DNA of 64,000 bases from Ascoidea asiatica JCM 7603. Lineage: Eukaryota > Fungi > Ascomycota. The stretch lies in NCBI GenBank assembly GCA_001600695.1, contig BCKQ01000014.1, positions 250,937-314,936 of the forward strand. Reading direction: 5' to 3'. Both the position numbers and the translations under genes were made by a program. The notes beneath the pieces are model-generated. The model was not told where the DNA came from and searched no databases. It saw only the letters and a list, made by a program, of their open reading frames with translations. This document shows positions 14,430 through 54,323 of the stretch, in pieces; positions within the stretch are counted from its first letter, which is position 1; each line of letters opens with the position of its first letter.

Positions 14430-14455
14430 GTGATTATTTGAATTTTATTTATTTA

Positions 14456-32700: not shown

Positions 32701-33208
32701 TAAATCAGATCCATTTGTTGAATTAAAATTAAATGGTAAAAAACTTTTAAAAACAAATAAAGTTAAAAAAACTTTAAATCCAGATTTTGATATAAATAAA
32801 GAAAAAATTTCAATTGATGTTTCAAATAGATATATGAGTCAATTAGAAGTTTATTGTAATGATTGGGATTTTGGTGAAGGACAAGATGATCCATTAGGTT
32901 CTGGAATTTTATATCTTAAAGATATAAATGTTAATGAAATAAATGAAATTAAAGTACCATTAGAATTAGAAAATAAAGAAGCTGGATATATAACATTAAA
33001 AGTTGAATTTAAACCTGAATATGTTTCAAGTATTAAAAAACATGAAACATCAATTTTAGATGCTGGTACAAAAGTATTTGGAGCAGGTAAAACATTTATT
33101 GGAGCCGGTGGAAAAGTTGTTGGAGGAGCAGCAGGAGTTGTTGGTAAAGGAGGTTCATTTGTTAAAAATAATATTTTTGGACGTAAGAAGAAAGCAGCAG
33201 CCAATTGA
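29717..33208 (+). CDS. Tricalbin (Tcb1/Tcb2-like ER-PM tether: TM hairpin, SMP domain, C2 domains)
   Basis: First ATG at 29717. ESMDWLNTFLDKFW and FTLGTKPPRI (SMP); several C2 domains, e.g. NLISADSNGKSDPFV...KKTLNP.F...DWD. Confidence 0.9.
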   Translation: MSTVTEMAGNSTFVPEKDNKESIKDSKDDLKEESKPEKPERKRVAKTANARGWKEAGGWTESDILTPEDELDDLLNTPTFLDNILPDIAYGDWYHNVIIIIISSLTCFIIGKFKFNIGVIFPFILIFSLYYRTQIRKYRSNLRDLAQREFSIKKIENDFESMDWLNTFLDKFWIFLEPSICKITCDQVNPIFTTLDFLPNFITSIWIDTFTLGTKPPRIEHVKTFPRTSDDVVVMDWCCSMIPNEISDMNIKQLKNHINQKVIIKIKLFKFLTFPIVIEDVSFKVTVRVRIRMMPNFPNIDTINISLPEFPEFDFVSKIFGQGIWNWEILSIPGLLLLINDMIKKFIGPILFNPFSFQLNIEELLKGNLNGSIGVLTLNIKNAKDIKLFDTTTGNTIDPYLNFTFDSNKILSKTKIIEDTTNPIWNEKIYLLINSLSFPLQIICYDYNDDRKDVKMGTINYDIQSIKSITNKLNINSSFLRNNKPVGNLNFDYNFNPVLEGKKIIDGSMEPPPELNTGIIRIEINECKIEEPENPNTFIEMYIDKKKISTTSIIKSNNNPNFNLIEEKLIFNKNKTKILFVLRNDKKKILDFLNTNLNDIIDRTEVDKKWIPFKNGNGEIKITANWKPVELETDSSSNDYADPIGVVRVLITKATGLRNLENVGTIDPYARILINGFQRGRTVPDDSTVNPVWNEVLYTTVTGPNQKLTIECMDVEKIGGDRTLGSFDIKLNEIIQKNDNNNDFNIFIDKDNRNNKLISKKGPKGTVEYHLSFYPSIQIMNLDEIKELKEEELLKEKKLIESNNNKEIKDKEKVEKTEDEKLEEEISKLDINHKKNLSLNQLIEYNSGIFVFQIFDGNFQSNGTYLQIFFDADNYPKFESMKIKNKKSNINLTGDTIIKEIGWSTITFRLSKENGSSRVDEFIEEANIPTRVLLQNSFYKPYKIQFNGGSIINLQTRYIPLIMEQIPLMDTILNSGFMTVTVINGRNLISADSNGKSDPFVELKLNGKKLLKTNKVKKTLNPDFDINKEKISIDVSNRYMSQLEVYCNDWDFGEGQDDPLGSGILYLKDINVNEINEIKVPLELENKEAGYITLKVEFKPEYVSSIKKHETSILDAGTKVFGAGKTFIGAGGKVVGGAAGVVGKGGSFVKNNIFGRKKKAAAN

Positions 33209-33225: not shown

Positions 33226-34521
33226 TTAATTATATAAATCAATAAATATATTTATGAATAAGATTAAAATTTGAAAAAAAAATAAAATTATTAAAACTAA
33301 AAATAAATTAATTTGATTTAAATTTTTTAAATTTTTTTTAAACATTATTAATAAATTATTAATTTTTTTTAATTTTTTATTTAATAAATTAACTCTATTA
33401 TTAATTTTTAAATATGATTTTACGGAAATATAAATTGGATTTAAAATTGGATTTGACCAAAATAAATCTGGAGAATCAAGAATATTAAAATATAAATTAA
33501 TTTTAATTCTTAAAATAAATAAATTTCCAATTTTTTTTAAAATTTTTTCTCTATTTAAATTAAAACCTTTATTTATAAGATAATTTGGTAAATTAATATT
33601 ATTTTTTATGATTACATTTAATAAATTTTCTAAATATGTGATTTTTATAGATTGTGAAATTGGTAAAGATATTGATAATAATATTAAATTTATATTTTTA
33701 ATATTATTTTTATTTAAATAAGTTGAAGATATTATTATGAAATCATTATATAATTTTATATTTTTACAATCATTATTACAATTATTTTTAGAATTATTAA
33801 TTGTATTTGATATGAAATAGTTAAAAGATTTAAATTGAATTAAGTCTTTTGATAATTTTTCAATTAAAAATTGTGTTATTATATTTTTAATTATAAAATG
33901 TTGTTGAAATTTATTAAAACCCCACATTACTATAACACCATAATTGAAAACAAAAAGAGTTTTAAAATTATATATATTTGAATTGTCATTGTCACTGTCA
34001 TTGTCATTGTCATTTTCATTGTCATTGTCATTATCCTTGTTATTGTCATTATCATTATCATTATTATCTTGATTGTCATCTTGATTAACATTATCAATCT
34101 CAATAAAATTATCTATATCATTAACATTTTGTTTATTATAATTTTCATTTGAAGAAATTGGTAAATTTAAATTTGTTAATAAATATTTACTAAATAATTT
34201 TGGATTTGAATTATAAATTTTTTTGAAATTTATTGAATTTAAGTAATTAAATAAACTAATCAAATTAATTGAATCTGATAAACAATAAGTTGATATTATT
34301 GGTAATAAATTTCTTTGATTTTTATTTAAAATTTCTATTTTCTTAAATTTATTGAATTTTATTTTTAATTTTGAATTATTTTCTAAGTTATTGTAATCAT
34401 TATTTGCATTATTAAAATAATAGTTATCATTAATCTTGAATGAGTTTAAATTTGACAATAGTGGAGAATTTTCATTTAAATCCTTAATATTATTGATATT
34501 ATTGTGATCATTATTGAACAT
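33226..34521 (-). CDS. RMD1: Rmd1-family (DUF155) protein, divergent
   Basis: LFVFNYGVIVMWGF, YNDFI, SISLPISQSIKI, IGNLFILRIKINL, LDSPDLFWS.P.L.PIY, RVNLLN, C-terminal TM helix. Confidence 0.8.
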   Translation of the reverse strand: MFNNDHNNINNIKDLNENSPLLSNLNSFKINDNYYFNNANNDYNNLENNSKLKIKFNKFKKIEILNKNQRNLLPIISTYCLSDSINLISLFNYLNSINFKKIYNSNPKLFSKYLLTNLNLPISSNENYNKQNVNDIDNFIEIDNVNQDDNQDNNDNDNDNNKDNDNDNENDNDNDSDNDNSNIYNFKTLFVFNYGVIVMWGFNKFQQHFIIKNIITQFLIEKLSKDLIQFKSFNYFISNTINNSKNNCNNDCKNIKLYNDFIIISSTYLNKNNIKNINLILLSISLPISQSIKITYLENLLNVIIKNNINLPNYLINKGFNLNREKILKKIGNLFILRIKINLYFNILDSPDLFWSNPILNPIYISVKSYLKINNRVNLLNKKLKKINNLLIMFKKNLKNLNQINLFLVLIILFFFQILILFINIFIDLYN

Positions 34522-36399
34522 TTTTTGTTTCTATTCTTCCAATATCTTATTATCTTATTATCTTACTATCGTATTATTTTATTATCTTATTGATATTTAT
34601 TGACGTTTATTTCATTCATCTTTCGAATTCTGTTAATCTTTCTGAGGTATTCAAAACCAACTTCAAAATTAAATTCAACGGAAAATGAGACAAAAAGACA
34701 AAGATTAAAACCAGGGGCTAAAATAAAACGTAATTCGTGGGTCTGACATAATGCCAGGTGACTACATTGAAAGAATCCTCTCCTCAATCGAGTTCCGTAT
34801 GTAAACCATTGATTGTACTTCCATCGAAATATCAGATTGTTACTAAAAAGATATCTAATTCAAATTACAAACATTTGTTAACTAAAATATAAAATATATA
34901 AAAATTGTAAAAAAAAACCGGGAGTTAACTGTCCTATTTATATTGGGTAACAATAAGTGCGGGTCATCCATCTCAAAAAAAAATTTGAAAAATTGGTAAG
35001 AAAAAGTTCACTTCCCATCATTAACAAATAAACTAAAATAACGACTTACTTCCAAAATGTTTCGACCATTCTGCGAAAAAACAAAAAAATTTTTAGACCT
35101 TTGCGATTCACACTAAACCTCGATGACAATGTTTGTAATCAACAAGATGGTCTTTTTATTTGTCATATGCGTTTGTAATTTTTAATCGAAAAATAGCCAG
35201 TAATAGTAGTACTAACAGAAATTCAAACCGGTTATAAATAATCAACTTAAAGCGTCACAGGGCACACAGACAATAAACCCATTATTAACTACTAAATAGA
35301 TTGCCTATAGAAACGCTCTTAGAAGCAACAGAAAAATTTTGTACAACTCTCACAGGCACCTGTGACGAGCACCCAAATCAAACGCAGCTCTTACGACTGC
35401 AATAACTAGCAGTAGTAGTCGGCAGCGTGATATAGCGTGCTTCGGCGCGTCGAAACCAAAAAACCAGAAACCTTCCAGAAACTCAGGAACTTAAGACCAA
35501 CAGCCAAACTTTAATTAACCCCTGCCACATATTTAGCGACGTGCACATCTAGTTAAGGTTTTAATCACCTCTCTTGATTACTAATTTTTTCATGAATTAT
35601 TTTGGTCTAATGGTTTGGTGTTGCCTCTTTTTTGACTTGAGTGATTCTTGAGTTTTTGCTGTGATAATGAAGAACAACATGGGAAAAAGTGTTTCAAGTT
35701 TTGGCTTTGCATTTAGACTAATCATTATTAATGCAAAATAAACGAAAATACAGTTCAATTTCAAAAACAAATTGAAGTACTGTACATGGCAGTTATATTA
35801 TACATTAAGGAAAGTGCTGGTTTCCTTAAATGACAATTTTATCAAAATGGCATGTTGACTATCTTGATTCAAAATGTAATTGTTTACTTTTTGGTTTAAT
35901 TATTTAATATAAAAATAGGGAAATGTTGGAATTTGGTTTCAGTGGTGGTTTGTTTAAATTGGTTGATTGATGGAACATCATGTGCTTAAATTTACCTTTT
36001 TGTTTATATAGTTTAAATGGCAATTTGATTTTGAATCGAATTGCAGTTTTGAGGTTTTGTTGATTCAAACGTAATGTTCGGTTAGTCGAGTTTTAGTGTT
36101 TTTGATATCAATTGCTTTGTTTTTTTGTTTACCAAATTAATATGATGTTTTTTGACAAATCGTTTTCTGTTAAAATTAGTATATATATGTGGAGATGTGT
36201 TTATTTATAATAGGTCGATTAATTATATGTTTATTTCGAATTAGCGTGACTAATTATATTTATTATTAATCATGCTATCTACATTCATTAATATTATTTT
36301 TATTATTAAAGATTATTCTATTTAATAGTAGGGAAAAATTGTTTTTTACACAGAATTTACATTTCAGGTTTTATGAAATACGTGGTATAGGTCTTCACT

Positions 36400-37560
36400 A
36401 GAGATCATAGCTTATTCTGTGTCCCCAATTCCCTTGATGGTAGCGCTGCTAATGATATAATTAATGAAGTTGAAGTTGCTGAATGGAATAATAGTTTTAG
36501 CAACATCACAGATGATGAAAAATAATATAACTATTCCACTTAATGAACTCAATCATTTTGCAAACAAGTAGCACTACATTCAAAATGAAATAATGGTGGT
36601 ACTTTAAGATGTAATTATTGTTGGCATTATGCTAAAGTTATTCATCTGTTAACATCTGAGCACAAATAAAATTTATGGGATGGTACGTTTGGCAGAGTTG
36701 TGGATATGTTTGGAATCAAAACTTTAATACAGAGAGGCATTACGTTCCCTGAATTAGTTAATTATATTTCAGATATGTTAAATCATATTCTTACTCTTTG
36801 TATTGTTGATAGTGCGGCAGGATTTTTAGACCCTTTATCTAACCGTGAAATAAATGTGAGAAAGTTGGTTGACAAGTTGGGAAACCGTAGGATCGCATTT
36901 GAAATTCTAGCACATTTAGATAAGGATTCCCTATTTGGAAATGATGTAAATGAGTTTACTATGAAAGTCAATTTAATTAGGATGAAAGTGAGAGGTGTTG
37001 ATTCTGCCTTTTCAGATGCAACTATTGCTAACTATATTCTAAAAGGTATAGGTGGTGGTATGGTTCTATAACGAAAAATCATTAGAGCTTAAGTTTCTAT
37101 GATATAGTTGGACGTGTCTAATACATTGATCAAAATGAATGAGGATATTGATGCAAACGGCGGAACTAAAGAGGCTTCAAGTTTGAGGATCAGCAATGTT
37201 AATAACCATAGTGAACAGGAAACAAAATAGAAAAATTCTAAGAAGAAAAAAATTCCCGGAAAAAGTTTCCATTCTAGAGTGGTTGGTGATACAAAGGCTT
37301 GAAGTTTTAAGTTAAAACATGAAAATGCCTATGGGAATATTGACTATAGGGCAAGGTTGGAAGCAAATTTCAGAGAGCTTCCAAGATATGATGGTAATTC
37401 TGATGCTTCAAAACATTGTACTAAATTAACTAATAATATCATTATAGAGTCAGCTGTTGGTTCATCTATTACATTTAAAAGACCATTATTACAAGATATT
37501 AATGATGCTGAGGATTCATAAATTTCGAAGGTCCTACTGGTAAAATCTTTACAACAAAAG
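36400..37560 (+). mobile_element. Decayed Ty1/copia gag and protease remnant
   Basis: ORF 36700-37071 ends in gag/UBN2-like DVNEFTMKVNLIRMKV...SDATIANYILKGI. Near 37435-37505, IIIESAVGSSIT.KRPLLQDI resembles a decayed IIDSG protease motif. Many stops; boundaries approximate. Confidence 0.6.
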
Positions 37561-37567
37561 AAGTTTG

Positions 37568-38412
37568 CGTTAGAAATAATCGAGATCTATAAATGCTAGG
37601 GCATATATTCGTACTAACACCTTAGGTAGTGAAGGTCTAAAAGACACGTACGTATAGTAGACCTAACAGAGTTTGGTATCATACAATAATGTGTGTAGAC
37701 TATGAACATAGATACATAATCAGGCATAAATATACATATTGTTGAATAAAGTTGCATTAAGTTGAATGAAGAATACATCAATTCAAATGACCTTGAATGA
37801 GTCTGTGTACAAGTACACACAAAGTCGGTTATCATGTGATATTCTACTCAGAGGGCATAACTCATGTGTGCTTACGTCAGGTATAGCTTACAAAGTAGAG
37901 AAGACCTTGAGATTCGTACGAGCGATAGTGGTAGAACCTTTAAGAGCATATTAAAACTAAGCCGCTCGGTACTAGGAGGCAAAAAGAGGAGCTAGAATTT
38001 AGCTACAATCCGGATAGATGTTAAATCCGAAAGGCCAATCGGAGCCAGGCAGGGACGCCATCTGGATGGCTGGATTGGCTAAGCTTAGTTTCATGTGAGA
38101 TAAGGTATAATTCTCACTGCGTATACCGAATTGTCTCGGAGTAAACAGGAGACTAGTGGAGATAGTCCCGTAAGGGATCTATTCCGAGTACGGCTTCGGG
38201 ATTAAAAATTATTCCGAGCAATTAGTGCGATTGTCTACCCCACTGGAAAGAGGGCTGATTGTTTTCCTATGGTAAAATTGAAATGTGAATTTCAATTAAT
38301 TTCTAATCAAGTTTTCAACCCTTTTTACAAGGTAAACTTGATTCCCACCCTCATTGTTCGACGGAATCCTCGGACTTTTGGGAATTCCAGAGAATTCTCG
38401 ATAGCTCTGTGA
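37568..38412. repeat. LTR-like repeat family A, copy 1 (inverted relative to copies 2 and 3; truncated at one end)
   Basis: Reverse complement of about 40720-41445. Begins CGTTAGAAATAATCGAGATCT versus TGTTGGACATAATAGAGATCT for the reversed end of copy 2. Confidence 0.9.
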
Positions 38413-39445
38413 GTTGAAGAATACATGTCTATCTAGAACAATAATGTATTCGATTTGATCGGTTCCAGTTCAGTCAAAGATAAACTAATGAGACGACGTT
38501 AAAAATTTACTGTTAAGAATGAACATTCTGGTGAACGTTTCAAAACAAGAATTCTTGCCACGGATTTAGTCAAACGGAAATACAAAACTTTGTTGATGCG
38601 GATTCTCCAGCAATGGGATATCAGACAGTTACTTTGGCTGTTTCCAGTGCTGCAATCAATCAACGGAAACTAGTTCAGTTAGACGGTAAGAATGCTTTTC
38701 CTAACGGTCCAGTTGACCAAGCTGTCTTTTTCAACCTCCTTCTGCTGCTGATACTCCTGTCAACAAGATATGGAAATTAAACAAAGGATTGTAGGGTTTA
38801 CAAAAATTTCTGCATATTTTGTTCAACAGTGTCAACAATGTGATTGTGAATCGAGGTTAAAAACAACCAGTTCTTGAATCTTGCTTGTTTCTAAAATCTG
38901 ACTCCATTCTTACAATCTATGTTCATGACATTCTTATTTCTGGTCAAACTGCTGCAGTTATTGATAAAGCTAGAAACTAACTGGAAACAAAATTTATGGT
39001 GAACTTCATGGGATATGCATATGTGTTCTTCGGTATTACAATTCCAAAAACCGGAAATGATATCAAAATGAGATCCACTGGTTTTATTTCCAGATTAGCT
39101 GAATATTATGAAATTTCCAGAGAAAAAGTTATTTCATCACCATTGGTTACTGCATTTGATGCTTATGATCATCCAAGTCAACAACTTAATGAAACTGAGC
39201 ATTCAAAGTATAGGTCCATTGTTAGTTGCTTCTCACTAATTGCAAATACAGTCAGATTGGATATTGCTTGTGCAACTTCATTGCTTTCCAGGTTTCTACC
39301 TACTCCTAGAACAATTCATTTGCACGCTGTTTTGAAAGTTCATCAGTACTTAGCTCAAACCAATGACTTTCCTATTCATTATTCAAAAGCACAATACTGG
39401 TACTTTACTACCAGTATTGTATTTTCCGGAGTCAACGTTCAATGA
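38413..39445 (+). mobile_element. Decayed Ty1/copia reverse transcriptase
   Basis: EEYMSI*NNNVFDLI, RFKTRILA, VQLDGKNAFPNG, IWKLNKGL*GLQK, IYVHDILISG (YVDD changed to YVHD at 38918-38929), YRSIVSCFSLIANTVRLDIACATSLLSRF; stops and frameshifts. Confidence 0.88.
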
Positions 39446-39613
39446 AGCGGCTGCAATGTTCGTATCATTGATTACAATTCGGTAATTTAAGAAAAAAAAA
39501 TAAAACTATTAACAGTTTTATTTTCTTCTACTGTCATTGAAATTTGATTCTCTATTTTTAGACTTCAATATCGAACGGCAACGTCTATGTCAGGGGCAGT
39601 ATGAGCTACATTA

Positions 39614-40430
39614 TGTTGGAAATTCTGAAATGTTTGAATAATTACTTTCCGTCCCATGTGAGTGATCGGTTCTGAGGTTTATCTCAAAAACCATCGAGGT
39701 GTTGCTGGCGAACTTTTCTTTTATTATTGGTTGTGCACCTTGTAGTTCGCTGTAATTTGAACAATTTTTTTGGATAATTGTACCTTCCTCAACGGAGAAG
39801 CTGCTTAGTTTTTGGCATACCGGTTATAGCTGTACTTTGCGTTGCCCAGACACAGCTTTACTGCTAATGAATATCTAATTTTGGATTAGGTATACGAGTG
39901 CTTCCACCCAGATAAAACTGTTTGAAAAATTTTGAAATTGAGGTCTTCACAACCCTGAGATTTCTGAGATACCGTTACAATTATCTCCTTGATCAAGGTG
40001 GAAATTCAAGCGGGAATACAGGCACGTGGAGCTTACGAAATGCCATTTCGTCCCGCGACTTATTGTTCCGGAAAAGATCTTGGTAATTTTTACAAGGCGA
40101 TAAAACAATTTCATTTTTCGACCGGAACTTTGTCGCAGTACCCTGTTAGCCGAGCCTTTATCCGCTGCTATCGGATTGTTAGTCAATTTATTGTTATGTT
40201 AGAGTAAAAGTACAATATTCTAAGCTATTCTTAGATTTCCTGGAAATGCCTAGTTTAGTCTACGTCTACATTATATTGCTTTCTCGGAACTTCGGTGAAG
40301 GTCTCGAATGTACCAGAAAGTTCTCGGTCTCCATTTTTCATTCTTCGCTTGTAGGTCCGTGTGAGTCTGGAATGCACTCGAATTTCGGTCTTTGTTAACA
40401 GAATGTCATTAACTCTTCCGGAATGCAACA
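39614..40430. mobile_element. Possible second LTR-like segment (family B)
   Basis: Starts TGTTGGAAAT about 15 nt after a PPT-like AGGGGCAG downstream of the copia RT; candidate end GCAACA at 40430. No second copy or TSD seen. Confidence 0.3.
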
Positions 40431-40536
40431 CTATTATTTTTGTTATCTCAAGTATGGTAAGTTAACTTGAACAACCACATTCTACACAGGTATTGCGAAG
40501 ATAGGTTTCCCCCTCCTACTTAGTCTGTCATAAAAC

Positions 40537-41445
40537 TGTTGTAAATTCTCATTCATTTCACAAATTTACAATTTCGAATTATATAATCAACTCTTTTACT
40601 TACTTTGTATTAACCAATTAACTCGTGCTAATCGATGATCTAAAAAAAAAACTAAATAAATCATATAAAAAATCAGAGGAAATTGATTCCATTTATCTTA
40701 ATTCAGGAGTCCTACGGGGTCCCGCAGAACTATCCAGAATTCTCGGGAAATCCCAAAAGTCCGAGGATTCCGTCGTACAATCGGGGTGGAAATCAAGTTT
40801 ACCTTGTAAAAAGGGTTGAAAACTTGATTAGAAATTAAATGAAATTCACATTTCAATTTCACCATAGTAAAACAATCAGCCCACTTTCCAGTGGGGTAGA
40901 CAATCGCACTAATTGCCGGGAATAATTTTTAATCCCGAAGCCGTACTCGGAATAGATCCCTTACGGGACTATCTCCACTAGTCTCCTGTTTACTCCGAGA
41001 CAATTCGGTATACGCAGTGAGAATTATACCTTATCTCACATGAAACTAAGCTTAGCCAATCCAGCCATCCAGATGGCGTCCCTGCCTGGATCCGATTGGC
41101 CTTTCGGTTTTAACATCTATCCGGATTGTCGCTAAATCCTAACTCCTGTTTAATTCTCCTCGTACCGAGTGGCTTAGCTTTAATATGCTCTTAAGGGTTG
41201 TACGACTATGGCTCGTACAAATCTCAAGGTCTTCTCTACTTTGTACGCTATACCTGACGTAAGCACCCATGAGTTATGCCCAATTATGGCTCTCTATGCA
41301 TAATTATACATAGTGTACACACATTATTGTATAATACATAACTCTTTTACGTTTACTATAGATTCGTGTCTTTTAGACCTTCACCACCTATGGTGTTAGT
41401 ACCAATATATGACCTAGCATATATAGATCTCTATTATGTCCAACA
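40537..41445. repeat. LTR-like repeat family A, copy 2 (909 bp, both termini present)
   Basis: Termini TGTTGTAAAT...ATGTCCAACA (TG..CA, TGTTG/CAACA inverted). Homologous to copies 1 and 3; has an internal deletion relative to them. No clear TSD. Confidence 0.88.
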
Positions 41446-42199
41446 ATAAGGAGGGGTCTTACATCCCATATTTTCTATATAATCTTTATATATTTTAACT
41501 TCACTTAATTATTTTTTATAAGTTGAATTAGATAAGTTCTTAGTAATAATTAAATATTCCTTTCGAACGACAATCAAATTTATTAATATATTTGGAATAT
41601 CAATTGCTTATTAAAGATAAGTATCCCTTTATTCTTTCATTGTTTTCTATCTGGCAAGGTAAGTCAGAGTACGACTTTAACTCTCTGATTATTATACTTA
41701 CAAGAGAGTGATCGCGAAAACTGATTAATCCTGTGGCATCTCATTTCCTTCCGCATTATTTAAGGTACTTGTCGCCATTATAGAACGTAGTTCCTCTCTG
41801 TCTGGTTATTAAGCTTACTTAGTTTATCGTAATGCTTTAACCAAAATTGAGTGACCTGATAATTTGAAGTGCTTTTCTTCTACTCATTGCAAATTCAAAA
41901 TTAATGCAAATTTAGTATTGTATGGAATGTTCAAAACAATAAAAGAATTTACTAATATAATTTGTTTAATATTACTCTGTATTTCAAATAAATTAGTTTA
42001 CTAATATTTCCGCTTACAGTTTTTATTCAATGTTTTCTGTTATATTTATGAATTCAAAATCCAATTTAAAATAAACTTAAATATCAAAGAACATAACCAA
42101 ACAGTAAAAAAAAAACTGAAAAAAAACAATACCAAAATCTTATAGTTTTACAAATTTTATAGCTTCAGTTGATCAATAACATATTATTACATATTTTAA

Positions 42200-44343
42200 C
42201 TCAATATTATATAATGATAACTGAAACTATTAACTCTTTCGCAACACAATTCAATCATAACATCGCTCTAAATGAATTCACGTTCAATAAAATTGATAAA
42301 GAAATTACATGAATTGCTCAACCAATCAACGACTTTAGATCTTTAGATAAAAGATTTAAAAATCAAGATTCCAATGTTGTTCAATACAGTGAGTACTTTG
42401 ATGAACTAAAATCTACCATTGCTACACAAAAAATCTTATATAGATATTGTTCAAGATATGCTGACATAATAACATCGTTTTTATCTAAAAAAAAAACTGT
42501 TAATGACTGTCCTGTTCAAAATAAAACAGAAGTACAAGTTTCTTCTGCCTCGAAAACAATGAACCCCGGTACGTCTGAAAATATTACTGGCCATTTGAAT
42601 TGTAATACTACTGAAGCTGATAAGGCTAGGTTTTTCGAACCTCAAGAGAATATCAAAGAACAAATTGTAACTGCCCTATTTACCATCTGCTGTTCCCAAA
42701 ATTGAAAAGCATTCACACGGTTTTTAGATCCCCAAAGTAAATAACCAAAACTTATTCAATGACCAGAATGAGGTTAAAAACTGGAGAGATGATCTTAATT
42801 AAATTCAATCTTTTGAAAGCAAGGTTGACTCTGACGCATCTGAAATCCAAAGGCTGAAAGTGCCTTACTTCTACCTGGTATGGCTATAAACTGAGATACT
42901 TCTGCTACTCGTATGGCAGGTACTTCAATCCCTCCAAAATTAAAAGCAAACATAATAATTAAAGATAGACATATTATAGAAAACTAATTCTAAAATTACA
43001 ATATATTGAGACGTACATTAAAATCGATAGGTTAATATATGATTTCCCGGGTATGGATCTTTATATCTATATTCTGGAAACTACAAATTTAGAATGGATT
43101 AACATCGTGAAAACCATTGCAAGAAATAGTTCAAGAAATTCTTCGTGCCCTGCTGCATATGCCTTCATTCTGGGAGGCATTGACATAGATTAAAATTATA
43201 GGGCTTTAGTTCAATAATTCAAACAAATCAAACATTCTGAAAATGAAAAACTTGTTAATCATCTTACGAGATTTATAACTTCCTATGAAAGTCTTCCTTT
43301 AAATAGTCTTTCTAGTCGTTTCCTCTGATGAACAACCATTTCTCAAATTAAAAATAAATTTCCTCATCAAATTCAATGAGAAACAAAATTTCCCCCAACT
43401 ATTGAATTATTTAATAGAGAACTCAATTGGTTCACTGCAGGAGATGTTTTTATAGCCGTTTTTATAGCTGTTTTAAATGAAGCTCTTATTCTCAGTGATA
43501 TTTATATGTTCAACAATCTTGAATATGTTATTGATTCGAATTCCAAAATAAACTTCAATAAAATTCGTTTGACCGGCCAAACGTCTTACTTCGGTAATCT
43601 GCCAATACATTTCCGAAATTCTTGTTTCTGGTATCGAAAACACAAAACAATTTGCAAACAGGGAACCTGCGAATAGAAAATCGAATGGTAATTCCAATTC
43701 TAGATACAAAAATCAACATGACAAGAAATCTAGCTACACGGTCCCTGAAGAAGCAGTGCAGGATGACCAACTTCAGAAAACAGAGCGTTAGCTGTCCTGG
43801 GAATCCTTGTCTGAAGATGAACACTTTAGATCAATTAACACCAATAACAAAACGTTTCGTAATAAATACTCGAATTCTACTGTTAATGATAAAAAGATGA
43901 AAATTCCTTTTGCCACTGGTGGCGAATCCAACTATTTTTTTGATTATTCTTTAAAACGATTTGAAATAAAAATGCTTAAAGCCTAAGTATTCAACAGTTC
44001 ATGGCTTTGTAGGCGCACTGATGGTCAAGAATGATGTCATTTTACGGCTATTCATTGAAAACGTTGGTTTTGTTGACCTTAAATGTGCGGTTTTACCATA
44101 AAGTTTAAGAACATCTCTCGATATCACTATTTGAAGTCGATTTTTTATGCCACCATATGTTTTCTGCAAATGATAATGATAAATTTTGAATTATGGTTTT
44201 TGATGATTTTGAAAAGTTTCCTTTCAAACCAGGGAGTATGCATGAACTACAAAAAGTTTACGTCTACACATGAAAACCGAATCAGAAACAGGAGTTTGAT
44301 GTTAAGAAATACCCTTAGTTAAATGATCCAACTCGAAGCTGGT
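42200..44343 (+). mobile_element. Probable decayed Ty3/gypsy gag-protease region
   Basis: Broken coding-like sequence; FATGGESNY near 43908 resembles a decayed (L/F)DTG protease motif; lies upstream of the gypsy RT across LTR copy 3. Confidence 0.45.
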
Positions 44344-45361
44344 TATTATCAGTTTTCATTCATTTTACAAAATCGAATATTTAAAGTTTAGTTACTTACA
44401 AACTAGGTATTCATCAATTAACTCGTGCTAATTGTTGATCTAAAAAGACAACCAAATAAATTAGATAAAAGAAAACAGGGAATCGATTCCTTTTACATTA
44501 TTTCTGGATTCCTACGGGGTCGCGGAGCACAATCGAGAATTGTTAGGTATTCACAAAAGCCCCGGGATTCTGGGGTAGAATCAGCGTAAGAATCAAAGTT
44601 ACCTTGTAAAAAGGGTTGAAATCTTGATTTGAAATCAATTAAGCTTCAAATTTCAATTTTATCATACTAACACCTATCAGCTCACTTTCCAGTGGGGTAG
44701 ACAACCAATGTAATTGCTGGTACCCTTTAAGCCCAATGCACCCACTAGTAATCGATTATTAAAGGACTACCTCGACTATTGTCCTGTTTATTTCGAGACT
44801 ATTCGGAATAGGCAGTGGGAATTATCCCTTATCTCACATGAAACTAGGTTTACCCATTCAAGAATCCAGGATTTTCTCCTCGGTCCGATTGGCCTTCAAC
44901 ATCCATCCGGATAGATGCTAAATGCTAAGTCCACTTCTACTCTCCTCGTACCGACCGGCTTATCTTCAATATGCTCTTAGAGATTTTGTATCCTTGGCTG
45001 GTACCAATGTCAAGATGTTCTTTACTTTGTCCGCTATACCCGATTTAAGCGCGCATGTCCGATTCCATGTGACTGGAATATTACATGCTATACGATCATC
45101 TGTTTACCTGTGAATAGACTTATGAAGTCTAATATAAATTGACGCATTCCTCGAGCAACTTAATGCTATTTTTTTATTGATATGAATATGTTTGCGTATT
45201 AATTCTTCTCTATGCATCACTGTATACAATGTATAGAGGTGATTTTGTACTACATGAGTTTGTTCCGGTTAATATAAATTCCTGTGTTTTACACCTTCAC
45301 CTCTTAAGGTTATAAAAACCATATATGCCCTACCATATATAGATCTCTACGATTTCCAACA
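44344..45361. repeat. LTR-like repeat family A, copy 3 (1018 bp, more diverged), inserted into gypsy pol
   Basis: Shares CAATTAACTCGTGCTAAT, TTACCTTGTAAAAAGGGTTGAAA, CACTTTCCAGTGGGGTAGACAA and TATATAGATCTCTA...CCAACA with copy 2, in the same orientation. Confidence 0.88.
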
Positions 45362-47600
45362 GTTACCCACCTCCCTCGAAACTCTGTTCAAACATACTAC
45401 CCAAACAACATCTGAATCACCAATGTATATCGGAAGCTACAACTATACTCCTCTTCTTAACAAATTCGCTGAAGCACTTCTTGAATCAAACTGAGACACT
45501 GGAGTATTTTTGAAACCAAAAGTGGTTGACCCTTTCGTTTAGTTCTTGTTCGAAAAGTTGATAAAGGTTTTTGAGTGTGTGTTGGTTATACGAAATTAAC
45601 TGCCATTAGTGTTTGGCATTATATTCCTTTACATTCTACTGATATTGGTCTAAAAAATCTTAATGGTGCTAAATAGTTCACTTGCCTAATTATGATAAAT
45701 AGCTTTTACTAAATTCCTTAAGATAATGATAGTAAAGCTAAAACAGCATTTTCATCCAATTCATGTCATTATGAATTTAATCTATTGGCTTTGGGCGTAG
45801 TCCATGGTACCTATACCTCCCAATCATCTATGAAAAAAATGATAGGTGATTAATTATGTTCTGCTTTTTGCTAATCATATAATTATTTATAGCCATAATA
45901 AGTTAGAGGAACATTGTTCAAGTTAATGAGGTCATTACTCAACCTGAAAAAGAAAAACATTTTAAATGTCAAGAAGTCTAAATTCTTTTGCATGGATGTT
46001 AAATTTTCAGGGCATATTCTTTCCTCTGAAGAACTAAAAACTGATCGGACAAAGATTAACAAGATCTTAGATTGGCCATTACCAAAGTCAATTATTACTT
46101 TAAGAGGTTTTACTAATATATGTTGATATTATCGAAACTTTAAGTGAAATTTTTCTCAACAGATAATCTATCCTACTGTTTCATTTTTTGGCGCCCCTAA
46201 ACAAGGAACAAAAATTGAACTAAATCTTTCTCTGATTCAAGCACTCACAACAATGTACAAAATCATTAACTACTGCTCCTGTCTAAAAAGTATTTTGTCC
46301 TCAGAAAGTTGCAATCCTACAAACTGATGCTTCAGATATTGCCTTGGGTTTGGTATTACTCCAACCATATATACAATAGAGCACTAAAAAAATTCGAAGG
46401 TATCTTCTTCATTTTGAATCAAGAATATTTTCAAAATCGGAACAAAAGTATTCTGGTCAACACCAAGAACTTTTGCCAGTTGTTCATTCATTGATTCATT
46501 GTCCATATAATGAACTATGCAAAATTAATTTAACACCTGATCATCAATCTGTTCAATATATTACAGCTAAATCCGCTCCCTGAAATAGAGTTATAACATT
46601 TATTAAACTCATTTAACATTATTTTTTTGATATTCAATATAAGAATAGAAAACAAATTGTTTTTTCTAAGTTACTCTCCTTAAAAACTGTTTTGGTTGTT
46701 AAATATGAATTGAAAACTTAATGGAAATTGATGAACTTAGTGAAAGTGCAACTAAAATAAAAACTCACAAAACCATTAAGGATTTCTGTGAAGTTGGTCT
46801 TAGTAAAATTAAAGAATATCTTTAAAATAAACAACTTTTCAAAAATCTGTAGTCCAGATTTATCTTTTCTTACTTTATGTTTTAGGAGAATGAACTTCAG
46901 ATTACACTTGAAGCTCATTCACGTACTGTTTTCAGTGACGAAATGTTACAGAAGTTTCTTGAAAGTTCCTCCTTCCGATTCTCAAGGTTCCATTGGAAAT
47001 TTAGCAAACGGAGTGAATGAGAAATTCTTTCACCCTGCTATTTTATTATCTCGTCAAATTATTACAGATTGTCTTCATTGCCAACCTGTCAAAAAGCCAT
47101 CTGTTTTCACTAACAAATTCACTGCAATTCCTGTTACAAACAGCTTTTACTATATGGGATGGATTAGTTTTTTGCTCTTCAAAATAAATCTTCTGTTAGT
47201 AAATATTGTGTTACTGCCATTGATTATGGTACACTTTATGCTTCTGTGGTTCCACTACCGGATTGTGGTTAATTAAAAGTTTTAAATTTAGTACAACCTA
47301 GAGTCCCAAAGCATTGTCAAATGTACCAAACTAGCATGGGTAGTACTTCTCGTTTTGTTTCAAACAATATTATTGAACTTGTTCCTCAAGCCCCCAAACA
47401 ACCCAACACCACAACATATATCCCAGAAATTAATTGTAAATGTGTAACGTTTGATCCAATCTTCAGCCAAATTCTATTGAAGTTGAATAATTTCCTACAA
47501 TGGGAACTTCTAAACATGGCTTTATTGATTTAGTACAGGTTCCAAAAACAGAAATTTGGATTTGTAGTGTGCTTGCCTGCTTTTGGTTTTAGCGCAGGTT
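45362..47600 (+). mobile_element. Decayed Ty3/gypsy RT-RNaseH-integrase
   Basis: LVLVRKVDKGF*VCVGYTKL, KAKTAFSSNSCHYEF, VKFSGHILS, ILDWPLPKSIITLRGF; RNase H TDASDIALGLVLLQ at 46323; CLHCQ and VTAIDY integrase motifs. Order RT-RH-IN is gypsy-type. Confidence 0.88.
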
Positions 47601-50600
47601 TAAACAGTAGTACGCTAAGATATTCAACATGACCTAAAATACGGCTCTCCAAAAGATCCCAAAGTAAAACCGAAAAATGGAATGCCAATATACGAAAAGG
47701 AAGCTGTCTCAGACATCAACTTTGACAACTCAAATACCGACCCGAAACTTTGCAAAGACCGATAGTGCATTAAAAGATTTTTTGTTGGCGATTCTGTTTT
47801 CAGCTATCAGTGGAATAGTATGGTGCTAATGTATGTGTATGCTTACTTACCGCTGAAGTGGTTTCATAAAAATGTTGATACGCGTGCAACATCTCGCTGT
47901 TAAATCACAATTAACGTAAATAGTAGTAAGTTCATCCTTAGTCTGTAGCCTCACTGTTCATTATCAAAGTCTTTTAAAATTGGGAACTAGTTATAAATAG
48001 TAATGCGCAATGGTTGAGTGGAGCACGCAGAGCCCTTGACCTGCAAAGGTGGCCCGATGGCGATGTGAAGCACTGCCCGTTTTCACAGTAGGTGTTGGAA
48101 AACATGTGCGGGTATTTTACTGTTTCAGCAGAAACCGTCGGAAACGTCCAACTATCGCGATTGTGCTCAAAATGTTTTGTTGGTCTTACCTTGCTTTAAC
48201 CACATCAGTGGCTGTCGCATGTTTTTATTTTTCCGTAAAGTTTGCTGTGCCGCTCATATATACATAGCATTCTTGGTGCTCTGAATATTACAGGATAATT
48301 CCCTGCACCAGTTTCGAGTTTTTTTCAAGTATAAAAATATATTTTTCACAAATGGATTTCGAACTTTTGCTGCATATGGTTACGCCCCTCTGGTTTCCAG
48401 TAATGAGAATCGGTTCTTTCAACCTCAATTGTGTTTATCCAAATGGTACATATTTTAAGTTTTAATTAATAATTGATTTCATTTGATTTCGATTTTTTTC
48501 CAGGAATACTAAATTGATTTGTTAGAACTCAAATTAATTTGGAAATTTAAACATGTTTCCCTTGTTGTAAAAATGCAGATATAACTCTCAGACGTTTTGA
48601 TAGCCCATTCAGGTTGTACAAACAAAACAGTCTGCTCCTGGCAGTGAGTACCAAAAAGCACAGTTTGACAAACAGTTCTGTAAGTACAAAATGGAGAATA
48701 GAAGTTTTTTAGTCCTTACTCAATCTACGTAACCTCAATTTAGATCGAAAGGGTCATTCGACAAGTGTAATGTTTTTTTTATCGGAGGTCCTAAAGATCT
48801 GTCAGTTAGGCCATCTAAATGAAATTGATATCTTAAAGAAAAACAACAACAATTGAAATTCTTTTCTACTAAAGCTGTAAATAAGAAACAAATCGTTCGA
48901 GATATGTGTATACCAAAATACAGTGGAACACATAACGCTTAATAATTAATTAAAATTTATAGGTCGACATGGGGCTCGAGCATTATGCCCCTAGCGCTCC
49001 GACTGACATCTAAGGTAAAGCTGTTTTGCACGTCATTATGATTGCTGTTACTGAACAGCACAATTAAAAAAAGCTGTTGAAATTTTGACATGTTTCTATT
49101 TTTCAATACAAATAAAGCAACCAAAAAACCCTCGATTATATTAGTGATTTCAGGGAACGTAATAGTAAGCATAATTTTTGTTTTTATTAGCTAATACAGT
49201 CTGCATATAAATGATAAAGATAATTGTCTTAATGTCAAGTATTTGCCATGGGCCTTTGGATTTTAAAAAAAATGATTGTCGTTTGGAATTCTTAATCCAG
49301 CTGTATCCAACAACTAATATTGTACCACTAATCTAAAGAGTGAAAATTGAGCTTCCCACTACCACACAACCCCAATGGGTGCTAGACAAACTGTATTTTC
49401 TGATTATCGGTTCATTACAAAAGTGGGCTTCGCTGATCACTCACTAAGTTTTAACCTTTTTAGAATGTTTTAGTATTTTTCAATAGCATTTACAAAAACA
49501 CAACATCTGGTTCCTAGGAAATCAGAAATTCATATTACTTTTAATGGTCCTCGAATAGTTATATTTTTGCTAGCACTCTCCACATTTTCAATACAATAAG
49601 GAGAATAATTTGCGGATTTTGTAAAACTGTTCTAACTACTACAACTGTCTCAGATCTTATCATTTGTTAAACATTATTTAGTCACAGTTTCCAATCATCT
49701 GTCCGATTACCGCTTGCTCTGACAGAAACTAATTAGTTGCTAACGGATTACAAATTCGAAGCAATGAATCGGCATTTTAATAGCTAATCTAGTTGCCGCT
49801 CACAAAGTATAAAATATAAGTGCATTTTGTCTTAATGATGCCACGGGTTTTAAAAACATGAAAAGGTTTTATGTTTGGAGATTTTTAATTTAATTAGTTG
49901 TCTAGAACATCAACCAAAAATGTGGGTGATTTTGTGACTCTTTAAAACAGATGTGACATGTTATCCAGCTGACATTGTTAGGTAAACTGGCTTAACGACA
50001 GAGTGGCTTTTTTAGACAAATTTAATTTACCGAGTATCAGGTTTTTGGTAATGGTTACGAATGCACTTCGGCTCACCACAGTTATGTTAATGCTAACATA
50101 ATTAAGATCGCTGATAAAAATAACAAGCAAGTTACCCTGTAAAAATAATGGATTTTGTCTTGCATAGAACATGCAAAATCAATTGTGATTACTACCCTTT
50201 AAATCATAAAATTGTGAAGCAACATTTTTTCAGCTATTATGTTTTTTTATAGATTATTACTTCTCGCTTTATTAGACATTTTCGAATTTGTATTTGACTA
50301 AAACGTGTGTGATCTAAAAGACCATTTAATTAAATCTAACTATTCACAACTATAATTAAATTTATCTCTTATAAATATCAATTAAATTATTCTTATATGT
50401 CATATAGATAATATCCTGGGTTTCTGTGTAATCTTTCGAATATATGTTTGTTAGTAAATTTTGGTTTTTTTTTCATTTTTTTTATAGAAAATTTATTACC
50501 ATGATAAAATCAAAATTTACAAAAGTAAAATGGACAATTCTACATTTTTGTCCATTACCCAAAAACCTTGGCTGTTTCATGTAAGTCTCCCACAACACAC

Positions 50601-50657
50601 GTTCCGCATGTGTGGTGACATATTTGGTCTTATCAGAAATCTAATAGTATTGTACAA

Positions 50658-50940
50658 AAATGCGGAATCTGTTTTATATGTGATTATTACAAAAGTGCTG
50701 AGTGTAAGTAAACATTATTGAAAACTTTGTAATTGTTTACTAGAAATGCGGGAGTTTGTTTATATTTAGCAAGCACATTAGAATTAATACAAAGTTGTTA
50801 AACAAAGTAACATGTTTCTGTGAACTTTTACAATTTTTCAATCATGCGGAGTACAGTGCGGGATTTCATAGGAACTTTGAAATTATTACAAAGTTTTTAA
50901 ACATTATCATTTTGCACTTAGAACTTTGCCATGGTAGCAA
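50658..50940 (+). repeat. Three very degenerate repeat units of about 90-100 bp
   Basis: Each unit has ATGCGG...ATTAWTACAAA(A)GT...AACTTT; starts near 50658, 50744 and 50843. Confidence 0.4.
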
Positions 50941-51642
50941 ATAGCCATTAGTATTACCCGTGATGCTATGTTAATCTCAATCCGCAAATTGGTATTGCGG
51001 ACCAATGAGCCAGACTTGTACTAGCTAATCTAAGTTCTACCCACGGAGCAGCAGGTTTTTGGTAATTATTACCAAAAAACTTAGGTTTATATTTTAGTAC
51101 CTAAATCATTGTCCCTTTATGAAAACCGTGAATAATCAACATTATTGTGTTAGTAAATAAAGTATGCGTAAGAAAGAGCTCCCTTTTGCATATTAGGATT
51201 CTCTTAGATTTCAAATTGCTTGTTCTATTGACGACAAAATCCATTTTTGTTTGCAGGGTAACTTCCTTGTTCTTTTCATCAGCGATGTTATCCACTTTAT
51301 GAGGTGGTTACATAATCAACAAAATTTCTCGACTATGGAGGAATTGGAAATCGGGAGAAAAAATAAAACATGATCGCATTGCCGAGAATTATCAGAATGA
51401 AATCATTAATATCGAGCGGTCAATAAAATTAGGTTGCGTGTGACTGGTAAGTGTGGCGCAGTACAGATATTTTCTTTTAGTGTCCAGATGAAATACTAAT
51501 ATAAATATTCTTTCCTCACTCATCTCATTTATCTGAACTTAACTATTAATTTTTTACATATTTGAGCACCATTTTATCTATCATAGTATATCAATAATTT
51601 AAATTAAAACTACTGACGAAAGATTATTATTTACATTAACAC

Positions 51643-52215
51643 ATGGCTTCACAAGATAATCCCCCCATTGTTCCTTCTGGTTGGAAGGCAGTCTGGGATA
51701 ATCAATATAAAACTTTTTTTTATGTCAATTTATCAACAAATCAATCTCAATGGGAAGCACCAAAATTAGATACAAAATCAGATATTAGACCACCAGTGGA
51801 AGCTCCACCTTCCTATAGTCAAGCTCAACAAGCACCTCAAGAAAAAAGTAAATCTTCGTTGAAAAGTAGATTGTTTGGTAGATCAAATCATCAACAACAA
51901 TATCCTCAGCAATATCAACAACAACCACAAAATCAACAATATGGTCAACAGTATCCTCAACAACAATACCAACAAACCGCACAACAACAACAATATCCTC
52001 AACAATATCAACAACAGCCACAGTATTATCAACAACCTCAAAGGCAAAAGAAAAGTGGATTTGGTATGGGTGGTGCTGCTTTAGGTCTTGGTACTGGTTT
52101 ATTGGGCGGTGCTTTATTAGCAAATGCATTTGATGATGATTTTGATGGTCCACCAGGAGGTGGTGATTATGGTGGTGATGATTTTGGTGGCGATGACTTT
52201 GGTGGCGACTGGTAA
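51643..52215 (+). CDS. WWM1: WW-domain protein Wwm1
   Basis: PP.VPSGWKAVWDNQYKTFFYVNLSTNQSQWEAP; Q/Y/P-rich middle; GLLGGALLANAF; G/D-rich tail. Confidence 0.9.
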   Translation: MASQDNPPIVPSGWKAVWDNQYKTFFYVNLSTNQSQWEAPKLDTKSDIRPPVEAPPSYSQAQQAPQEKSKSSLKSRLFGRSNHQQQYPQQYQQQPQNQQYGQQYPQQQYQQTAQQQQYPQQYQQQPQYYQQPQRQKKSGFGMGGAALGLGTGLLGGALLANAFDDDFDGPPGGGDYGGDDFGGDDFGGDW

Positions 52216-52598: not shown

Positions 52599-54323
52599 AT
52601 GCCAAAAATTACTAATTATAATGTCAAAAAAATCCATAATCATAACAAGAATAACAAAGATGATTCACTAACTTTATTAAAGTGGCTTAATAATGAAGAA
52701 TATTTTGAGATCAGACAAATTTTATTAAATTCAGTTTATAAAATTAAAAATAAAAGATTTAATTTTTTAAATTTTTTAAATTTTGTAATTTCAATAATCT
52801 TCAAAAAATTTTTAAATTTAAATTCGTTTTTCAAAACATTTGAATTGAATTCAATTTTAAGTAATAATAATCATCCAATATTCAATTACAAATTAAATAT
52901 TTTACTTTTTTTAAATAATTATTTATTGATAAATGATGATAATAGTAGTGACTTAATAAAGAATTTAGATGCAATTATAAATTTATTGAATAAAATCATC
53001 AATTCAAACCTTAAAAATCAATTTATTTCTAAAAATTTCAATCAAATTTTAGATATATATTTAATTTTTAAAAATTATATTAATTTAAATGATATACTTT
53101 TCAATAATAATAATGATAAAAACAGTTCTAATAAAAAAGAAATCTTAGATTTAATCGATAATAAAGATAATTTACAATTAATGAATTTAAGAAATGAAAT
53201 AAACTTATTGAAAGATAGTGAAACAGATAATGACTTGCTAATTTACTATAATGATTTGGTAAATAATATTGATTTAAAACTATTAATATTTAAAATTAAT
53301 AGTTTATCAAATCAATTTATTCATATAAAATCATTAATTATTAATAGTGAGGATATTGATGATTATGAATATGATGATAGTCTACAGGAAGATTGTAAGG
53401 AGCATAAAGAATATATAAAACATAAGAATCAGATACAAGATAAAAAAGATGAAGATATTTCGGAAAATAGTAAAATAGAAGACAAAGAAGAGAAACAAAC
53501 TCATAGAAAAGATTTTAAGGAATATCCTAAAGAAGATCTTAAGGAAGATTTTAAAGAAGATTTCAAAGATCTTATCGAACAGAGACACACTAAAAAAGAG
53601 AAAGACAATATTCATGTTAATGATGATGATGATGAAAGAACCAAAAAATATAATCAATTGGAAAATCTTCTAATTATAAATAAAGAAGAAAGAAGAAATC
53701 TTTTGATTGATATATCACCAGTTTTAAAAAATAAATTAAAGCCAAGATTTTATACTTTAATCTATTTAGACTATGATTGGAATAAATATAATAAAATTCA
53801 TTATAATTTAATGAATAAAAATCCTCCACCAAAATATGTTAATGGTTATTCATTTAAAATCTATTATCCAAATTTACATCCAATGCAAATTCCAACTTTT
53901 TCAATTAAAGATGAATCACAAACGTCAAAAGAATCAAATTCTATGATTGATCCATATTTAAAGAAATATTCAAGAATTGGTGATAAATATTGTATCATAA
54001 CTTTTTATCTAATCAAAAATAAAAATAATTTATCTAACTTCATTGAAACAAGCAGTTCAAATAATAATAATAATTACAGATATAATAACAATCATTTTCA
54101 ATTCAAAAAAAAGCAAAAACAATATATAAATACTAATAATATTAATAATAATAACAATAACAGTAATTTCAGTAATAATAAATATATTGAGAATTATGAT
54201 GAAATTTCCTTTAAAATTATTAAAAGAGATTGGGATAGATCTTCAAATTTTTTTAAAAGTAAGTTTGAAAATAATATACTTGAAGTTAATTTTAAATTCA
54301 AGAAATTCTTTTATAGAAAATAG
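52599..54323 (+). CDS. Cactin homolog (cactin C-terminal domain), divergent
   Basis: KPRFY...YDWNKYNKIHY...NPPPKYVNGYSFKIYYPNL...YDEISFKII.RDWD.S...FKSKFENNILEVNFKFKKFFYRK matches the recalled cactin C-terminus. Confidence 0.8.
   Translation: MPKITNYNVKKIHNHNKNNKDDSLTLLKWLNNEEYFEIRQILLNSVYKIKNKRFNFLNFLNFVISIIFKKFLNLNSFFKTFELNSILSNNNHPIFNYKLNILLFLNNYLLINDDNSSDLIKNLDAIINLLNKIINSNLKNQFISKNFNQILDIYLIFKNYINLNDILFNNNNDKNSSNKKEILDLIDNKDNLQLMNLRNEINLLKDSETDNDLLIYYNDLVNNIDLKLLIFKINSLSNQFIHIKSLIINSEDIDDYEYDDSLQEDCKEHKEYIKHKNQIQDKKDEDISENSKIEDKEEKQTHRKDFKEYPKEDLKEDFKEDFKDLIEQRHTKKEKDNIHVNDDDDERTKKYNQLENLLIINKEERRNLLIDISPVLKNKLKPRFYTLIYLDYDWNKYNKIHYNLMNKNPPPKYVNGYSFKIYYPNLHPMQIPTFSIKDESQTSKESNSMIDPYLKKYSRIGDKYCIITFYLIKNKNNLSNFIETSSSNNNNNYRYNNNHFQFKKKQKQYINTNNINNNNNNSNFSNNKYIENYDEISFKIIKRDWDRSSNFFKSKFENNILEVNFKFKKFFYRK

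Follow-up and report, generated by a model that had tools for sequence, protein, structure and literature searches.

Across budding-yeast orders the location of centromeres is conserved while their structure changes (Haase et al. 2025, bioRxiv 10.1101/2025.04.25.647736; Hession et al. 2025, PMC12711049). The conserved location spans Saccharomycetales, Saccharomycodales and Phaffomycetales, with chromosome arms exchanged at centromeres (Hession et al. 2025, PMC12711049). Clusters of Ty5-like retrotransposons mark centromeres in Serinales, Pichiales, Phaffomycetales and Ascoideales (Haase et al. bioRxiv 10.1101/2025.04.25.647736; Hession et al. PMC12711049); in Ascoideales, centromere-linked gene groups are tied to such clusters, which reach up to 131 kb in Saccharomycopsis fibuligera (Haase et al. 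2025, bioRxiv 10.1101/2025.04.25.647736). A 2026 assembly of Saccharomycopsis schoenii resolved six Hi-C-supported centromeres on 6 chromosomes, with cores that are gene-poor gaps of 25-34 kb containing decayed copia remnants at ~33% G+C (PMC13148404). Our literature search found no paper mapping centromeres in Ascoidea. Here we describe a gene-free island of dead long terminal repeat (LTR) retrotransposons in Ascoidea asiatica JCM 7603, at positions 34522-51642 of a 64,000-nucleotide stretch of contig BCKQ01000014.1, which most likely marks a regional, epigenetically defined centromere or at least the leftmost island of a centromere-proximal transposon domain. The structure type and the idea of a conserved location are already published, and the centromere label is at present a reasonable annotation, not a discovery.

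The analysed stretch, hereafter the window, corresponds to C14:250937-314936, where C14 stands for contig BCKQ01000014.1 of an assembly of 20.3 Mb in 71 contigs; other contigs are numbered likewise, fetched loci carry an L number, and bare positions refer to the window. The host DNA has a very low G+C content of 15-28%, and its coding sequence contains long Asn-rich runs. The genes of the window are closely packed without visible introns, and the intergenic gaps other than the island measure at most ~4 kb. The island, at C14:285.5-302.6 kb, is a gap of 17,121 bp bounded by an RMD1-like open reading frame (ORF; 33226-34521, minus strand) and a WW-domain ORF (51643-52215, plus strand), and its G+C content is 33.2% versus 21.5% and 23.1% in the two flanks. 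No host gene was found across 34522-51642, where the sole ORF of at least 150 aa is a 162-aa frame in a gypsy pol remnant. An earlier interpretation made from the letters of the DNA without database searches (the sequence-only reading) had described ~17 kb without an intact host gene in a gene-dense window, filled with nested, decayed copia, gypsy and LTR copies; both descriptions held, the second when intact elements taken from other genome loci (L001 and L002 for copia, L003 and L004 for gypsy) were compared with the island by tblastn and blastn. At least 72% of island bases fall in repeat families (Ty3/gypsy, two Ty1/copia families and LTRs) that are nested in one another, and the remaining sequence occurs once per genome with transposon-like G+C content. 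The island and its parts are as follows.

34522-51642, no strand: gene-free retrotransposon island, 17,121 bp, 33.2% G+C; candidate centromere or centromere-proximal transposon nest.
34787-35159, minus strand: Ty3/gypsy LTR fragment, 78-80% identical to the LTRs of intact gypsy elements (L003, L004).
36134-37560, plus strand: 5' gag/protease part of a Ty1/copia family 2 element, cut off by LTR-A1.
37569-38409, minus strand: LTR-A1, an inverted family-A LTR whose 5' end lacks ~180 bp; it forms the left arm of an inverted pair.
38400-39390, plus strand: reverse transcriptase (RT) fragment of Ty1/copia family 1, with an RVT_2 match at C14:289483-290081.
40174-40536, plus strand: gypsy 3' internal end and first half (~185 bp) of a gypsy LTR, matching L003:7359-7706.
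40537-41445, plus strand: LTR-A2, a solo family-A LTR, inserted in the gypsy LTR and forming the right arm of that pair.
41446-47646, plus strand: decayed Ty3/gypsy element (LTR end, gag, protease, RT, RNase H and integrase start), interrupted by LTR-A3 and lacking its 3' end.
44341-45361, plus strand: LTR-A3, an old solo family-A LTR nested in gypsy pol, ~75% identical to LTR-A2 and other copies.
47647-49804, no strand: decayed stretch, ORF-free, single-copy in the genome, 35% G+C.
50246-51150, no strand: LTR-like repeat of family B, ~0.9 kb, 70-73% identical to copies on C16, C4, C17, C39 and C34.

These relics differ in age, with identities of 75-94% to their relatives. The largest is the gypsy relic, ~6 kb of gag-pol with many stops and frameshifts and ~75% DNA identity to the intact L003 and L004 copies, whose coding sequence continues past LTR-A3 without loss. 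Upstream of it, the second half of the gypsy LTR lies beyond LTR-A2, at 41446-41576; since gypsy 3' sequence stands to the left and gypsy gag to the right of this one LTR, 40174-41576 represents what is left of two gypsy copies that stood in tandem with a common LTR, later split by LTR-A2. The family-A LTR measures ~1 kb and has TGTTG...CAACA tips. LTR-A2 is flanked by a degenerate 5-bp target duplication (ATAAA/ATAAG) and is 85-93% identical to at least 40 other copies, LTR-A1 is 87-89% identical to other copies, and the tips of LTR-A2 and LTR-A3 begin with TGTTG or TGGTT and end with CAACA. The copia family 1 fragment aligned by tblastn with aa 722-1052 of the intact copia polyprotein (up to 70% identity) and shares 83% DNA identity with L001 and L002. 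The family 2 part has 71-79% DNA identity to five other loci, each located 0.5-3 kb upstream of rve and RVT_2 matches on the same strand. The gypsy LTR fragment at 34787-35159 appears to be solo, as no gypsy internal sequence lies beside it. For 47647-49804, 35160-36133 and 39391-40173 we found no ORF, no Pfam match for the ORFs tried and no second genomic copy.

More than one assembly shows this arrangement: the junction of LTR-A1 with copia and both edges of LTR-A2 are spanned by contigs from two independent studies at single-copy depth, although the sequencing runs behind those contigs may be this assembly's own source. The runs found to contain this sequence are all of genomic DNA. Other origins for the nest were considered and set aside. 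Targeting by tRNA genes or RNA polymerase III was ruled out by the absence of any tRNA gene or Rfam family in the window, and a subtelomeric position by the housekeeping genes (CSN5, EMC2, VMA6, POP7) that separate this and neighbouring islands and by a contig end without telomere repeats. No satellite array was found in the block. Nor does the window contain a match to the point-centromere motif, in which CDEI and CDEIII are separated by an AT-rich spacer of ~80 bp.

The genes on either side carry the second line of evidence. Domains were assigned with Pfam and RMD1 homologues were collected by an exhaustive HMMER search, giving the following six neighbours.

27443-27775, plus strand: ECM15 ortholog (YkoF/Thiamine_BP family, 110 aa), the left marker, third gene from the island.
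29711-33208, plus strand: tricalbin (TCB), with C2, C2_TCB1 and SMP domains.
33226-34521, minus strand: RMD1 ortholog (DUF155, PF02582), directly left of the island.
51643-52215, plus strand: WW-domain, Gln-rich protein (WWM1-like, PF00397), directly right of the island.
52599-54323, plus strand: cactin (PF09732), tail-to-tail with AVT1, as in Ascoidea rubescens.
54503-56686, minus strand: AVT1 ortholog (PF01490), the right marker, third gene from the island.

All six names, first proposed in the sequence-only reading, were borne out by Pfam and homologue matches. ECM15 is 75% identical to an A. rubescens gene with PF01910 that adjoins RMD1; the top matches of RMD1 are A. rubescens Rmd1p (41% identity) and a protein whose annotation gives it as similar to YDL001W RMD1; and AVT1 shares 68% identity with A. 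rubescens Avt1p, 51% with a protein of S. cerevisiae and ~50% with yeast proteins annotated as AVT1/YJR001W. Among named proteins, those nearest to the proteins of the window belong to A. rubescens DSM 1968 (Ascoideales). Pfam also supports LYS2, an MT-A70 protein, CDC6, HSF1, PRP22, HRQ1 and FMO on the left side. Under the naming rule of S. cerevisiae, YDL001W (RMD1), YBL001C (ECM15) and YJR001W (AVT1) are the first genes beside CEN4, CEN2 and CEN10. ECM15 (Anc_3.206) also adjoins the ancestral CEN3 (Hession et al. 2025, PMC12711049). Both flanks of the island match ancestral centromere linkage, the left through RMD1 and ECM15 and the right through AVT1. We estimate the chance of finding two independent first-beside-centromere markers among six flanking genes at ~5e-4 per island, or ~1-2% after allowing for ~30 islands. 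PRP22 (YER013W) and WWM1 (YFL010C), which had also been cited as centromere-linked support, add no weight, because 7% of all genes stand within 13 positions of a centromere, and such genes are expected by chance in a 20-gene window.

Taken together, anatomy and flanks suggest the following model. A long-lived nest of dead LTR retrotransposons occupies the intergenic gap between RMD1 and WWM1, and Cse4/CENP-A nucleosomes would sit on its non-coding, transposon-derived DNA. New copia and gypsy insertions may be drawn to that chromatin or merely tolerated there, and nested layers would build up as older copies decay and younger solo LTRs split them. The flanks join the ECM15/RMD1 side (CEN2/CEN4 in S. 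cerevisiae, ancestral CEN3) to the AVT1 side (CEN10 in S. cerevisiae), and the left flank of one ancestral centromere beside the right flank of another is the outcome expected of arm exchange at centromeres. We consider it quite probable that the block forms part of the centromeric transposon domain on its chromosome; as a candidate kinetochore site in its own right, it stands in our view at even chances.

Comparison with four described types of centromere shows shared features and differences in each case. Like the S. schoenii cores, it is a gene-poor gap among housekeeping genes, with decayed Ty1/copia, some younger LTR elements and ~33% G+C, in a species of the same order, with no point-centromere motif and almost no satellite DNA. 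Unlike those cores, which measure 25-34 kb and form the most AT-rich spot of the chromosome, the block is 17 kb long and more GC-rich than its surroundings; and whereas S. schoenii has one core per chromosome by Hi-C, here several islands occur per contig. With the Ty5-cluster centromeres of Debaryomyces hansenii, Scheffersomyces stipitis, Ogataea polymorpha, Cyberlindnera sargentensis and S. fibuligera (Lynch 2010 PMC2997560; Haase 2025; Hession 2025) it shares dead LTR elements, solo LTRs of the form TGTTG...CAACA, a large intergenic region and flanks of common ancestry with point-centromere flanks. It departs from them in several ways: a search for a Ty5-type half-tRNA primer site gave no match, the copia that could be read resembles Ty1, the largest part is a Ty3/gypsy relic, clusters do not appear to keep to one per chromosome, and copies of the same families turn up at many further sites. 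The inverted LTR-A1/LTR-A2 pair around a middle section recalls the inverted-repeat centromeres of Komagataella phaffii, Candida tropicalis and some Barnettozyma, but here one arm is a truncated LTR and the other a solo LTR inserted separately, and the two are 91.7-94% alike. The flanking orthologs ECM15, RMD1 and AVT1 are shared with the point centromeres of Saccharomycetales, from which the block differs in being ~100x larger, made of transposons and free of a CDEI-CDEIII match in the window.

A number of observations, set out below, weigh against a centromeric role. The first concerns element type. The pattern CAACA followed by 0-8 bases and GGTTATGAG, the primer site formed by half of the initiator methionine tRNA (iMet), has no match genome-wide or in the fetched loci, a search left incomplete by several unread LTR and primer-site regions of intact copies, the primer sites of copia family 1 among them. 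No internal part was found attached to any LTR-A copy. The one complete copia that could be read is the following.

C14:353414-359709 (L008:8478 to L009:4773): young, apparently complete copia with LTRs 99-100% identical.

This copia has a clean 5-bp target duplication (GTTTC) and a gag ATG at the LTR end, and its primer site, TGGTACCGCC, pairs with a tRNA 3' end in the Ty1 manner. The first and last motifs of LTR-A are shared with its LTR. Its family is probably still active, and this copy lies 51 kb from the dead island. Ty5-style tips (TGTTG...CAACA) and a 5-bp target duplication are present; on present evidence, the block is best described as an island of copia and gypsy relics, not a Ty5 cluster in the strict sense.

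The second concerns gene order in A. rubescens DSM 1968. Both flanking groups are kept there, ECM15-x-RMD1 at L020 (x being one intervening gene) and tail-to-tail cactin-AVT1 at L031, but they lie on different scaffolds, and no gene desert was found within 10 kb on one side and 20 kb on the other side of RMD1, or within 10 kb on either side of AVT1. Relative to A. rubescens, RMD1 is inverted in A. asiatica and a tricalbin gene stands between RMD1 and ECM15. The 1165-aa neighbour of RMD1 in A. rubescens shows no similarity to tricalbin, nor to the 1092-aa neighbour of AVT1, so that neither equivalence was retained. With its RMD1 and AVT1 sides on separate A. rubescens scaffolds, the island sits at a synteny break, which fits centromere arm exchange and a nest at an ordinary breakpoint equally well.

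The latter possibility, a transposon safe haven at a rearrangement breakpoint in which harmless nested insertion and ectopic recombination reshuffled the flanks around no centromere at all, draws on this break, with its separate scaffolds, inverted RMD1 and adjoining tricalbin gene, on islands that far outnumber the expected chromosomes, and on the frequent position of LTR-A within other transposons in the loci read. We regard it as unlikely, given the first-gene-from-centromere orthologs on both sides, a coincidence estimated above for the genome as a whole, and the extreme clumping of LTR-A on multi-megabase contigs.

A third set of observations comes from other centromere-linked genes. RER1 (YCL001W) and NTH1 (YDR001C) are, in S. 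cerevisiae, the first genes beside CEN3 and CEN4. In A. asiatica they are convergent direct neighbours at C16:87429-91262 (L029:7429-10000, L030:1-1262), separated by a 0.9-kb spacer that contains one tRNA gene and no transposon; the closest island is 45 kb off, and comparison of the spacer with the island revealed no common motif beyond A-rich runs. The junction looks like the reciprocal product of centromere arm exchanges, minus the island, and suggests that one or more ancestral centromere sites have either lost their island or never acquired one. MRPL32, at C3:1489.8 kb, is 48 kb from the closest copia match. URM1, SSL1, HAT1 and CDC5, neighbours of centromeres in S. cerevisiae or in yeasts of other orders, lie at least 100 kb from any transposon match in a map that is incomplete. 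With RER1/NTH1 and these four genes away from islands, linkage between such genes and islands is not general, which weakens the weight of the flanks.

The RER1|NTH1 junction, persisting without an island, also bears on whether the block might be the relic of a former centromere, active when the arms were exchanged and later silenced, for instance because the chromosome number fell or the centromere moved by tens of kilobases, with the dead transposons left behind. The bulk of the elements are old (gypsy and LTR-A3 both ~75% identical to their relatives), and centromere moves of 12-250 kb are documented (Hession et al., PMC12711049). The younger insertions LTR-A2 (90-93% identical to other copies) and LTR-A1 imply, in contrast, that the site kept receiving elements, and we hold this explanation to be very unlikely.

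The fourth and broadest set concerns the number and distribution of islands, surveyed with RVT_2, RVT_1 and rve profiles and with LTR-A as DNA. The G+C profile of C14 shows further islands at 315-322, 336-362 and 365-389 kb, making four within 105 kb; they are separated by genes for PWWP, EMC2, CSN5, SSU1-like, POP7 and VMA6 proteins. (A JAB-domain gene 28 kb to the right is CSN5/RRI1, which rules out RPN11, YFR004W, located near CEN6.) Contig C16 begins within an island of at least 42 kb (C16:1-42 kb), islands were found at six of six 10-kb probes around LTR-A copies, and the genome total is a dozen or more. Many small contigs are transposon-rich fragments. S. fibuligera has 7 chromosomes; set against the 6-7 chromosomes of relatives, a dozen or more islands would outnumber the centromeres, in an assembly of 71 contigs of which many end in islands. 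Gypsy is spread along the arms as single copies, often with open frames, and is not centromere-specific.

The family-A LTR is more concentrated. Counting a conserved 18-base word with at most 2 mismatches across the whole genome gave 54 copies, versus 1 match for a control word, and these are strongly clumped: all four copies on C1 (2.7 Mb) lie within 21 kb and all three on C4 within 51 kb, the single copy on C7 falls within a copia cluster, and there are none on C2 (2.5 Mb), C5, C6, C8 or C9. The proposed pattern of one LTR-A cluster per chromosome is seen, contig by contig, on C1, C4 and C7; C3, C10, C12 and C15 each have two separate clusters. Matches to copia RT form one main cluster of 40-70 kb on each of C1, C3, C4, C7 and C11. 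The sequence-only reading had named the scattering of similar clusters, many per chromosome, as evidence that would tell against it, and this was found in part, with four islands on C14 and many genome-wide. Its larger claim, of ancient gene linkage kept around a retroelement centromere, keeps the support of the anatomy, the gene names and published precedent, and loses ground to the many islands and the doubled LTR-A clusters.

This distribution is most economically explained if several islands lie together near the centromere of each chromosome, in a domain of 40-105 kb, the block being the leftmost on C14. A pericentromeric status for the block, with the kinetochore at C14:365-389 kb, in another island of the 105-kb domain or past the contig end, is then possible, if doubtful. 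The island at C14:365-389 kb, 62 kb from this block, is the bigger of the two at ~24 kb and also holds old LTR-A copies (73-81% identical), transposon domains on other contigs span 40-73 kb, and the S. fibuligera clusters are larger still; the present block is the leftmost of its four and not the largest. Yet it is this island in particular that genes adjacent to S. cerevisiae centromeres abut, whereas the genes beside the other C14 islands (VMA6, POP7, an RRM protein, CSN5 and EMC2) are not centromere-adjacent in S. cerevisiae.

Should Cse4 mapping confirm the centromere, the genus Ascoidea would join the yeasts with centromeres of retrotransposon relics, and the locus would offer a clear case of two ancestral centromere flanks (ancestral CEN3 and S. 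cerevisiae CEN10) joined across one island. The island and the island-free RER1|NTH1 junction would then form a pair on which the idea of a location kept while structure is replaced in place can be tested, and the same two loci could help to decide whether transposons make centromeres or merely gather there.

The inverted LTR pair within the block has counterparts elsewhere. LTR-A1 and LTR-A2 stand head to head, with arms of 0.84-0.91 kb and a 2.1-kb middle, and share 94% identity over 557 bp and 91.7% across the full alignment; they are no closer to one another than to other LTR-A copies. Comparable head-to-head LTR-A pairs occur on C12, C1, C15 and C18, and on C12, C1 and C15 the partners are sister copies, with 95.6-98% mutual identity versus 88-94% to other copies. 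Among 11 adjacent LTR-A pairs, five are head-to-head, three tail-to-tail and three direct, a bias that is not significant. The middle sections of different pairs have nothing in common, which rules out a composite or DIRS-like element with inverted ends behind them. It is conceivable, though decidedly unlikely in our estimation, that working cores are head-to-head LTR-A pairs whose arms are gene-converted around unique middles of 1.7-4.6 kb, the core here being LTR-A1, middle and LTR-A2 (37569-41445). Such pairs would constitute an inverted-repeat centromere built from solo LTRs, intermediate between the retrotransposon-cluster and inverted-repeat types, each of which is reported to replace the other at the same site (Hession et al. 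2025, PMC12711049).

Several further observations concern the repeats themselves. The head-to-head pair on C1 (L012:3337-7780, or C1:1955337-1959780; others lie at L011:3379-7116 and L013:2263-8931) falls within a palindrome with 2.15-kb arms and a 139-bp spacer, the inner 1,120 bp being 99.9% identical, and sister pairs of this kind point to inverted duplication or gene conversion within transposon islands. On C26 (L010:4211-9708), two 100% identical LTR-A copies 4,467 bp apart each occupy the same gypsy position. They represent a recent tandem duplication of a gypsy copy that already carried LTR-A, as opposed to the paired LTRs of a single element, and the same structure seems to be present on C55. 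The family-B repeat of the island is flanked by inverted 75-bp repeats (50103-50176 and 51216-51290, 85% identical), for which a tRNA was ruled out and no Rfam family matched; their unit of ~75-120 bp is found as single copies at ~10 further genomic sites.

Two observations on the host genome are added. APS (adenosine 5'-phosphosulfate) kinase (PF01583, MET14) has zero matches anywhere in the assembly; Saccharomycopsis species are not known to assimilate sulfate, and this loss may reach the present Ascoidea lineage too. In keeping with a G+C content of 15-25%, runs rich in Asn, Asp and Lys, at 7772-18673 and elsewhere, greatly lengthen host proteins, among them HSF1 (1049 aa), CDC6 (833 aa) and CSN5 (623 aa).

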